Positions 8,451-11,686 of a stretch of 64,000 nt of DNA are shown piece after piece. The stretch spans positions 248,001 through 312,000 of the forward strand of contig OZ251228.1 in NCBI GenBank assembly GCA_965240325.2. Reading direction: 5' to 3'. A program made the position numbers and the translations under genes. How positions within the stretch are numbered: the first letter of the stretch is position 1; each line of letters opens with the position of its first letter. Under the pieces are notes generated by a model. The model saw only the letters and a program-made list of their open reading frames with translations, ran no database searches and was not told the origin of the DNA. The stretch comes from Rebecca billardiae RCC1528. Lineage: Eukaryota; Protista; Haptophyta.

Positions 8451-8561
8451 CGCTGGAACCTTACGACTGAAGCAGCAGACATGACTCATGAGTCTCTGTC
8501 TGCAGACAGAGAGACTCTCACATGAGTCTCTCAGTTTATCCGGCTGTTTATCCGGCCGCCT

Positions 8562-9222
8562 GAGGCCACTCCACCGAAATCAGCCGGCGGGTGGGCATGT
8601 CGGTAGCGCCTCCGGGTGGGGTTACCCCACCCGAGCGCGCACCTCGGGTGGGGTCAGTGGGCGCTGACGGCGACGCGCGCCGCGGGCGTCGCTCGACGCG
8701 CACCGCGGGCGTTTTTCGAGTCCGCGTGGCCCGCGCGCGCGTCCTGCGGGTGCGCCCAGCCACTCTGCCCTCGCGCGCCGCTGGCTGCGCGCCTCTCCGC
8801 CTCTCACGCCGCTCGCCAATGGCCCGCGACTGCGCGTCGGCACGCTTGGCCGCCTCGGCCGATCGCGAGCGCGCACAGGCGGGCACAAGGAAGGCTGACG
8901 ATGATTTGCGGGCGCGTTGTGCGCGGACCATGCGTATACGCTCGGCCCAGCCGCACGCGTCGGTCGCGCACGCCGACCAAGGCGAGCTCGAGCGCGTGCG
9001 CAAGCTGCCACTCGCCCAGTTTTGGACACATGATGGTGCCAGCGACTCGAGCGCGCCCAAGCGCCGGTAGAGTGCGCGCCGCGCTCCCGCGAGGAGCGGC
9101 GCGGTCGCAGATCACCCGTGCGCCTGCGCCCTGCGCCCTGAGCGATCCGCGCGCCCTCGCCTGCGCCAGACGCGCGAGGCAGCGGCGCGTCGCACGTGCG
9201 CCGCGCTCGCGCGGCGCACGCC
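8562..9222 (+). repeat. Left terminal inverted repeat of element 1
   Basis: Reverse complement of ~10957-11614 with a few 2-bp indels and substitutions. Confidence 0.92.
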
Positions 9223-10956
9223 TTGCTACCTGTAGCCTACGCACGAGTAGCAGCCACAGCCATATCGATGCCATTAGACAACGGTGCTAGTTAGTCTGAG
9301 GCACATGCTGAGACAAGGGGACAGCATGCTCGCGTGACCAAGAGCATACCAGACGCGGGCATTGTAGCTTGACGATTGGCAGATACGCTACTTTCGGCAG
9401 TACTGTTCCCACGCATCGCGGCCACACCTTGTTGCACCACCGCCTGCGCTGTCGACAGCGCCGTTCACAGCGAGCACAATGTCACACAGCGCCGCCTCAT
9501 AAGCACGCCACGCCCGGATCTGCCACGTGCTGTGCCACTTGCCTAGCTGGGCAGCACGCAAGATGGCTGTGCGCGCAGAGTGATGCCAGCTGCGCTGTGT
9601 TCCCGAGCCCTGACAGCAGCAGCTGGGGCTTGGCGCAGGACTGCGTGGCGCCGGCGTGGCGACTGCGCATCGGCGTGTCGATGGCAGTGTGGTAGGTACC
9701 GCCGATGGCTCCGCGGCGGCGCGTTCGCCCGGCTTGGCCATCGGCTCTCTCAAAGACACTTCAGACGCAACGACTGCACGCGTTCGTCAAGGCAACCGCA
9801 GTGGCATCCAAGGCGTCCAAGACGGCAGCCTGGCACTGACTCGGACGACAAAGCCGCAGCGGTAGAGGCGACGATGAGTTGACACGACTGCGGCCGCCCG
9901 CGACAACACTCGGCCGCCAACACGCCGTCAACCGAAGATGAAGGGGCTGCTCGCGGCCGCCGAGGGGCGCCGATGGCCAGTCTGCCGTCATGTGAGCGCA
10001 GACTGCCACGAGGCTGCGCGGCCTGCGGCCTGCGAGCGGCGGCCGTCAGGCGGCCAGCCACCGTGGCGACCGCTGCTACTGTTGAAGTGCGGCGGCCAGC
10101 GCAGCCCGGGTGACTTGCTCGCGACCGCAAGCCGCGGCGGCAGCCGGCCAAGTGGGCCGCGCGCGCGCGGCGCCGCGAGCCACCGCGGCCATCGAAGTCG
10201 GTCTCAGCCAGAGTCTCGCCGCGGTCAGCGGGCGGGCGCCGCCGGGCCCGCCTACCGATCCCTGATCAGGCGGCCGCGCGGCTGCGGCCGGTCCGCAGCG
10301 CCGGCATGCGCCGAGCGGCCCGCACCGAATGCGGTTCATTCACGACCACGACAGAAAGCTGCTCAGAGGCGTCGTACGTCAAGCCCCGTGCTCCACGCTG
10401 AGACATCGTCACGGCGTATGCTACAACTATACTGTGAGGGCCTTTGCCACTGAGTCGTCGTCGCAGCACGAGTCGATCAATCAGCACGCAGTCGTTGCTG
10501 CCTAGCGCCCAAGTCGCTCCTCGCCCGCGCTTGCGTCTGCATCGATGCTATGCAGAGCAGCACTCCTTCGGCTATCGCTGGCGTTGATTGCGGCCGGCGC
10601 ACGAAGCGAGTCCATTCGAGGTGAGTACGCATCGCGCTGCATGCACGCGTCAGTACCGGGCTGTACGCGTCCTCGTCATGGCAGCCGGAGATGATGGTCG
10701 TGTCGTGTGGCGACTGGTTGCGCAACCTGTAACCTGGCGACAGCGACGCAGTGGACTCGAGTCTGACGTGACGATTCTGCTGATGTGCTGTCCAGGGACG
10801 ATACACGCGCGAGGATCAGGAGGCTTAGGTGCACCGCCGCGCTGGTACACAGCCTGTCCGTTCAAGCGCACGCCCTGCGCGCCCTCCTCATCCTCGCGCA
10901 GGCAAACACGCAGCTGAGGCTCATCATACCAGCTGCGGCCGCTGCATGCAGGCTGC

Positions 10957-11614
10957 AGGCGTGCGCCGCGCTCGCGCGGCGCACGTGCGACGCGCCGCTG
11001 CCTCGCGCGTCTGGCGCAGGCGAGGGCGCGGATCGCTCAGGGCGCAGGGCGCAGGCGCACGGGTGATCTGCGACCGCGCCGCTCCTCGCGGGAGCGCGGC
11101 GCGCACTCTACCGGCGCTTGGGCGCGCTCGAGTCGCTGGCACCATCATGTGTCCAAAACTGGGCGAGTGGCAGCTTGCGCACGCGCTCGAGCTCGCCTTG
11201 GTCGGCGTGCGCGACCGACGCGTGCGGCTGGGCCGAGCGTATACGCATGGTCCGCGCACAACGCGCCCGCAAATCATCGTCAGCCTTCCTTGTGCCCGCC
11301 TGTGCGCGCTCGCGGTCGGCAGAGGCGGCCAAGCGTGCCGACGCGCAGTCGCGGGCCATTGGCGAGCGGCGTGAGAGGCGGAGAGGCGCGCAGCCAGCGG
11401 CGCGCGAGGGCAGAGTGGCTGGGCGCACCCGCAGGACGCGCGCGCGGGCCACGCGGACTCGAAAAACGCCCGCGGTGCGCGTCGAGCGACGCCCGCGGCG
11501 CGCGTCGCCGTCAGCGCCCACTGACCCCACCCGAGGTGCGCGCTCGGGTGGGGTAACCCCACCCGGAGGCGCTACCGATGCCCACCCGCCGGCTGATTTC
11601 GGTGGAGTGGCCTC
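10957..11614 (-). repeat. Right terminal inverted repeat of element 1
   Basis: Reverse complement of ~8562-9222. Confidence 0.92.
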
Positions 11615-11686
11615 CGCCTTTTTCCCCGGGAGCGCGAGACTCACGAACGGGAAAACTCCAAGCGGATTGAGGATGCCTAATGCGGC

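Follow-up and report, generated by a model that had tools for sequence, protein, structure and literature searches.

Transposons that encode no protein are classified on two working criteria, the length of the target-site duplication (TSD) and the sequence of the termini. Sola elements are flanked by TSDs of 4 bp and Galileo by TSDs of 7 bp, and a symmetric target combined with a fixed stagger is the product expected of a symmetric DDE-type transpososome. Galileo, a member of the P superfamily, is foldback-like with very long terminal inverted repeats (TIRs), and its superfamily is clear only from its transposase (PMC4168063); long arms are therefore not diagnostic of superfamily. The Repbase rule for non-autonomous elements asks for a TSD of equal length and for a match at terminal positions 1-11 (PMC4455052). 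Here we describe an element in a 64,000-nt stretch of the genome of the haptophyte Rebecca billardiae RCC1528 (GenBank assembly GCA_965240325.2, contig OZ251228.1, positions 248,001 to 312,000; hereafter the window) that belongs to a group failing every standard assignment. We consider it, with a probability of about 0.85, to be a non-autonomous class II TIR transposon from a 3-kb family, in which it is one of two copies of the youngest subfamily (A), and to be part of a group that has GAG ends, a common 20-bp terminus and a 5-bp TSD and that is moved in trans.

Structure and copies of the element

The element spans positions 8562-11614 of the window, is 3,053 bp long and runs from GAGGCC to GGCCTC (Table 1). 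Compared end to end, its arms are 98.8% complementary over 662 nt with four mismatches and two gaps, and small indels divide the alignment into stretches of 37, 553 and 74 nt, each 97-100% complementary. Both flanks carry CGCCT, a TSD of exactly 5 bp when registered at the termini, and outward extension of the arms stops here, where the T at 8561 does not pair with the C at 11615. The near-identical arms of about 660 bp, the GAG termini and the unambiguous 5-bp TSD had all been reported in a first-pass annotation of the window and are upheld by this comparison. A 19-nt form of the terminus occurs twice in the window against an expectation of 0.11, and scans with Rfam and for tRNAs gave no match inside the element.

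The genome assembly comprises 72 Mb in 41 contigs at approximately 68% G+C, with the window at C11:248001-312000. An arm query and an interior query each recovered the identical set of about 11 loci genome-wide. These copies are dispersed, with flanks and duplications that differ from copy to copy, and fall into three subfamilies: A, consisting of the window copy and C12:1074167-1077212, B with three copies and C with five. Identity is about 99% within subfamilies, 96% between B and C and 88% between A and either of these. Two subfamily C copies at separate loci show 12 differences in 3,087 positions, the window copy and its sister differ at 22 positions plus indels, and copies at different loci with intact duplications are 99.3-99.6% identical. 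Near-identical copies at unrelated loci, each with a different intact duplication, are real evidence for recent movement. The earlier annotation had argued for recent activity from the identity of the arms; the activity is borne out by these copies, but the arms, which evolve in concert (see below), are a poor clock. A genome search with the interiors of two families found no larger relatives.

One subfamily B copy is split. Its arm positions 1-102 (L045, C17:693130-693232) and 94 to the end (L062, C17:783941 onward) lie 90.7 kb apart in opposite orientation, and both junctions show an identical foreign transposon end and an identical 9-bp duplication, GGCGGAGGC. This suggests that another element, one making a 9-bp duplication, inserted in the arm and that an inversion of about 90 kb followed.

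Open frames in the interior of the window element do not exceed 171 aa and none of the 10 open frames of the element has a Pfam match. In arms and interior alike, subfamilies A and C differ without any 3-base periodicity, and more than 20 frame-breaking indels separate the two. On these three grounds a coding interior is ruled out; the element is without a transposase gene of its own, and the statement of the first-pass annotation that no intact open reading frame was present was right in substance. With TIRs, a TSD of fixed length, dispersed copies and no transposase gene of its own, the element has most of the features by which a non-autonomous TIR transposon is recognised.

Termini, duplications and targets of the wider group

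The first 20 bp of the element (GAGNCCAYTYMACCGAAATC), referred to here as the class I terminus, have 137 matches in the genome, compared to none for a reversed control. Together these mark out 61 two-ended elements, as well as 15 single ends, belonging to at least eight families that have only the 20-bp terminus in common. The two-ended elements are 1.04-4.0 kb in length, with the exception of one 7.6-kb pair on C16, and arm lengths across the group are 440-930 bp. The duplication was scored in the 24 copies whose flanks were read, and a perfect 5-bp duplication was present in 21 of these and a duplication of another length in none. The remaining three are a nested or rearranged copy and two that are short and damaged. 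The first-pass annotation had staked its claim on the existence of other copies in the genome, the family alone having about 11 in all, and on the absence of TSDs of 4 or 8-10 bp, none of which was seen among the 24.

We calculate that at 68% G+C the flanks of any one copy would match over 5 bp by chance with a probability of about 0.002, and a chance origin of the termini and flank matches is ruled out by the terminus counts and by the 21 duplications in 24 copies. When the empty site was rebuilt for these 21 copies, the target consensus was found to be a GC-rich palindrome, c|CGNCG|g, with C at -1 in 15 of the 21, G at position 2 in 14, C at position 4 in 16 and G at +1 in 11. The group is abundant and recently active, and does not fit any standard assignment.

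A composite arrangement like that of insertion sequences (IS), with two elements placed around a gene, was considered and rejected: adjacent elements on C3 carry their own duplications and no close pairs flank anything. Relatives elsewhere were also sought, but the terminus pattern gave 60 single metagenome matches and five on viral contigs with zero inverted pairs, and these are regarded as chance matches. At C11:1119643-1148553 three copies of the L031 type lie exactly 12,950 bp apart. They represent a tandem segmental repeat of approximately 13 kb that carries the element, and the insertion is therefore older than the duplication of the segment.

The end module and the arms

Behind the shared 20 bp lies an array in which an 8-12-bp motif occurs in direct orientation at +27/28 and +52/54, inverted at +63/65 and again direct at +84/86. 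These positions are constant in at least 11 families whereas the motif differs by family, being CGGGTGGGG in A, CGGGTAGGGG in B, CGTCCCGGGCT in L031, CGGCCAGGGCT in L033, CGTCCAGGGCT in L040, CGTCCTGGGCT in L046, CGTACCGGC in L034 and TGGGGAGGAT in L041. Between subfamilies that are 5-15% apart a single motif position has changed, and the change is present in each of the four sites of both arms. The array may be read as a palindromic pair flanked by two half-sites, that is, as putative binding sites for the transposase or for a partner protein. With its constant geometry and family-specific motif the end module provides a clean system for the co-evolution of transposon ends and their readers.

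The arms themselves evolve in concert. When subfamilies A and C are compared, both arms have changed identically in 99 columns, as against 14 changes private to one arm, and the mirrored changes include indels of 13, 7, 2 and 1 nt. Within single copies the arms differ by 0-12 mismatches and are 97.3-100% identical when gaps are counted. The divergence between the arms of one copy is about equal to that between sister copies, and homogenisation therefore seems to be linked to the propagating lineage and not to resident copies. Arm identity consequently cannot be used to date an insertion. The mirrored changes suggest that the arms could be kept alike by conversion within a hairpin or cruciform, or by the rebuilding of one arm from the other during repair. 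Concerted evolution of arms of 0.4-0.9 kb is informative on the origin of foldback-like elements.

A second class of terminus

Inside the C16 copy is a nested element of 4,668 bp that has arms of 860 bp, ends in GAGGGAGCACGGCCGAACTC and is flanked by the 5-bp duplication CGGCC. Its terminus (class II) is like the class I 20-mer at 13 of 20 positions, with GAGG and, at positions 13-20, CCGAAnTC among those in common. The motif array of this element is its own and surrounds a CCCACTGG box, which is also present in several class I families. At this locus (L049, C16:2040302-2047944) the insertion point of the class II element is 42 bp in from the end of a class I element, and the group therefore inserts into the end modules of its relatives. 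As with the window element, the 4.67-kb family shows no coding signature and no Pfam match.

A degenerate pattern built from both terminus classes was used to search the genome. It recovered 14 pairs of the 4.67-kb family (3.8-5.8 kb), three pairs of a GAGGGACCAC family (3.8-6.9 kb) and 11 identical GAGTGCGCACAGCCGAACTC termini, every one of which is single (C8:108969+, C13:46471-, C13:1602081+, C14:1849082+, C15:266043+, C15:2040441-, C16:1576780-, C20:1035052-, C22:1039191+, C27:302715- and C36:372987-, with the orientation of each terminus). No partner terminus was found for any of these 11 ends at up to three mismatches to either class II pattern. Each locus, known to about 3 kb from the terminus, has one arm of about 770 bp and, beyond it, a rearranged interior of 1.2-2.1 kb with a relationship to the 4.67-kb family, and the 11 copies include two internal length variants. 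The presence of 11 one-armed copies on nine contigs implies an element with unlike ends. The transposase may sit in this one-armed GAGTGCGCAC family, which is the first place to look, or outside any element.

One copy of the GAGGGACCAC family (C35:615864-622752) is 6,889 bp long compared to the usual 3,843 bp. The additional sequence, some 3.05 kb, is not a class I element and lies inside the last 136 bp or thereabouts of the right arm.

Search for a transposase

No autonomous partner sharing the class I termini was found, as all 61 two-ended elements are either too small to hold a transposase gene or enlarged only by nested insertions. The 7.6-kb C16 pair is an ordinary element containing the nested 4.67-kb element, and a 4.0-kb pair on C24 is likewise an ordinary element with an insertion nested near one end. 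Single ends were considered as the tips of long autonomous copies, but the seven that were read are truncated beside host genes (encoding an LtrA-like protein and a histidine kinase) or have a mutated partner.

A genome search with profiles for rve, MULE, RAG1, Tn3, Harbinger, Chromo, hAT, piggyBac and P placed no match in a terminus or in the roughly 8 kb inward of one. The RAG1 profile (PF12940) had zero matches in the genome, but control genomes also gave zero and this silence means little; the Tn3 profile had no genome match, and the absence of any genome match to the P profile (PF12017) is weak evidence. The rve profile recovered 19 copies in frames of about 1,960 aa, with the look of long terminal repeat (LTR) elements, and seven copies with a weak match in frames of about 1,159 aa (one of them at C18:719158), and no locus of either rve family is near any terminus. 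The MULE profile recovered 15 loci of at least three lineages, none of them near a terminus. There were also two Harbinger-type loci, three piggyBac-type loci, 19 chromodomain matches and one broken hAT dimerisation motif, all far from every terminus. An ordinary MULE as partner, which the first-pass annotation had held out as contrary to its view, is not associated with any end, and nor is any other recognisable transposase.

Two loci met in this search deserve separate mention. At C23:328244-328534 there is a single-copy, strong MULE domain (53.8 bits) in an open frame of 1,051 aa, distinct from the giant Mutator families of the genome (about 22 bits). A chromodomain 'relic' 9.7 kb upstream of the window element was rejected as a candidate, having no clear transposase frame and no link to the element.

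Movement of the element and alternative explanations

In the mechanism that we propose, a transposase supplied in trans would bind the end module of about 100 bp (the 20-bp terminus and four motif sites) at both ends of the element. A symmetric multimer would then pair the ends and cut at the G of GAG, and the ends would be joined to target phosphates staggered by 5 bp at the consensus target, with gap repair subsequently creating the duplication. Several observations weigh against our interpretation of the window element. No transposase was found by the genome profile searches in or beside any class I end, and about six terminus-like matches with two mismatches exist beyond those listed, and one of these may be an isolated autonomous copy that has diverged. 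It is also difficult to see how a single transposase could serve all families when each has its own motif, repeated identically at four sites. Finally, the assembly contains no empty allelic site, only paralogues of the neighbouring gene at 72-74%, and with neither such a site nor an excision footprint cut-and-paste and copy-out movement are not distinguished.

The transposase is on no element with these ends in the assembly and matches no profile tried. We suggest, tentatively, that the group may represent the non-autonomous members of an undescribed superfamily of eukaryotic cut-and-paste transposons, characterised by a 5-bp TSD at c|CGNCG|g, GAG termini, CCGAAnTC at positions 13-20, a four-site array re-specified in each family and an enzyme invisible to current profiles. 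It is about equally likely that the group is a divergent branch of a known superfamily, because duplication length can shift within a superfamily (PMC10045372). The claim of the first-pass annotation that the element fits no standard superfamily stands in so far as no compared family matches, although to be unclassified is not the same as to be a new superfamily. Of the known enzymes, a Transib/CMC transposase with its RAG1 fold belongs to the only classical cut-and-paste superfamily with 5-bp TSDs and GC-rich palindromic targets. The duplication in 21 of 24 copies is in agreement with this, and the target consensus is similar to sites published for Transib (cCASTGg, cCAWTGc and a CGGCG duplication; PMC1131882), but the ends begin with GAG and not with the CACWRTG heptamer and no RAG1-fold gene was found near any of them. 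We think this mover rather unlikely. We are more doubtful still of a Mutator-related (MuDR/IS256-like) transposase with its stagger shortened from 9 to 5 bp. Mutator and Foldback elements typically have long arms and GAG or GAGG termini, and the genome holds at least three MULE lineages, including that at C23, but no terminus has any of the 15 MULE loci close to it and we know of no Mutator element with a 5-bp duplication. Shifts of TSD length within superfamilies such as IS481EU and Academ (PMC10045372) are in its favour.

A retroviral-integrase-like transposase, similar to that of Ginger2/TDD, appears improbable: enzymes of this kind give duplications of 4-6 bp, with TDD-4 and TDD-5 giving 5 bp (PMC2836005), and the seven-copy family with the weak rve match is a potential source, yet Ginger, IS3/IS481 and LTR elements end in TG...CA as opposed to GAG...CTC and no rve locus accompanies a terminus. 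Movement as single-stranded or hairpin DNA, with the motif copies and arms acting as structures and not as protein-binding sites, could account for the perfect co-variation of the four motif copies within each family, for arms that stay identical over long periods and for ends that fold better than shuffled sequence in most families (z -1.7 to -3.7). In the predicted single-strand folds, however, the partner of the inverted motif copy varies from family to family, a hairpin has no need of the three copies, out of four, that are direct, and HUH-type enzymes leave no duplication whereas here a constant 5-bp TSD and a palindromic target are seen; we regard it as very improbable. That the structure is an assembly artefact or a local inverted duplication, and not a mobile element, has a negligible probability. 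A single inverted duplication can mimic long inverted arms, and the first-pass annotation had raised an artefactual inversion as a concern, but the structure recurs at many loci: the copy census, with 61 two-ended relatives on many contigs in unique flanks, refutes this explanation, as do the approximately 11 dispersed family copies with their distinct flanks and distinct duplications. The probability that remains falls to a mover of some other kind.

Insertion site and neighbouring genes

The transposon inserted into what was formerly a 178-bp spacer between a fucosyltransferase gene and a GT2-like glycosyltransferase gene, and it now occupies the upstream region of the latter (Table 1). Its position 68 bp upstream of the start codon may influence the expression of that gene. 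The 3' flank of the fucosyltransferase gene contains, immediately left of the insertion, an imperfect palindrome of about 60 nt (8470-8535), for which Rfam offers a single match, weak and below threshold (RAGATH-32, 18.6 bits; cut-off 41.8).

Table 1. The window element and its neighbours, with positions in the window
Feature	Position	Strand	Evidence or detail
Left TSD copy, CGCCT	8557-8561		Flank comparison at termini
Left TIR arm, 662 nt	8562-9223	+	98.8% complementary to right arm
20-bp terminus GAGNCCAYTYMACCGAAATC, common to all class I families	8562-8581	+	137 exact genome matches; reversed control 0
Subterminal motif array, motif GGGTGGGG	8589-8653	+	Direct 8589-8596, 8614-8621, 8646-8653; inverted 8625-8632
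Non-coding interior, 1,733 nt	9224-10956		Present only in the approximately 11 copies of the window element's family
Right TIR arm	10957-11614	-	Mirrored terminus 11595-11614, motif array 11525-11587
Right TSD copy, CGCCT	11615-11619		Flank comparison at termini
Host gene, family-10 fucosyltransferase	7038-8450	+	PF00852, 82.7 bits; stop codon 111 bp left of insertion
Host gene, GT2-like glycosyltransferase	11687-13075	+	PF13704 at cut-off; ATG 68 bp right of duplication

Relationship to known transposons

The organisation of the ends, in which a family-shared terminus is followed by family-specific motifs, finds a parallel in the En/Spm-CACTA elements, where direct and inverted subterminal motifs are read by a second DNA-binding protein. 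Those elements have CACTA ends and 3-bp duplications, however, and their motif copies are more numerous and less regularly spaced. The 5-bp duplication of the group also sets it apart from Sola, and from Polinton/Maverick elements, which have a 6-bp TSD, AG...CT ends and a polymerase/integrase body of 15-20 kb, as against 5 bp, GAG and no long element here. Mutator/MULE elements and the Drosophila Foldback (FB) elements are similar in their G(A/G)G termini, long inverted arms and many protein-less derivatives, but have duplications of 8-11 bp (found in none of the 24 copies here), and no MULE locus accompanies any end here. The 'Foldback' label given in the first-pass annotation is apt for the long inverted arms but is loose, as the arms are unique sequence here and tandem repeats in Drosophila FB.

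Autonomous copies of Galileo exist, whereas none is known with these ends here, and P and Galileo elements differ further in their duplications of 7-8 bp compared with 5 bp; the P profile (PF12017), as noted, had no match. Ginger2/TDD elements (TDD-4 and TDD-5) are cut-and-paste DNA transposons that do make 5-bp duplications (PMC2836005), and they were omitted from the 5-bp groups listed in the earlier annotation, which was correct in giving 5 bp for elements of the Transib type. Their TGTNR...YNACA termini, AT-rich targets and TIRs of 50-180 bp (PMC2836005) have no counterpart here; they use an rve transposase, and neither of the two rve families of this genome has a locus near a terminus. 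Transib is alike in its 5-bp duplication and GC-rich palindromic target with c...g just outside the duplication (PMC1131882), but has the CACWRTG heptamer and short TIRs where these elements have GAGNCCAC... termini (GAGNCCAYTY...) and arms of 440-930 bp, and no Transib- or RAG1-like gene was found in association with the group. The Repbase rule accordingly assigns the group to none of the families compared (PMC4455052). New in this analysis are the co-variation of the motif on a fixed four-site geometry, the concerted evolution of the arms and a second class of terminus, diverged from the first but leaving a 5-bp scar as well. If the enzyme does represent a new lineage, it would add a further group of 5-bp DNA transposons beside Transib, the source of RAG1, and Ginger2/TDD.

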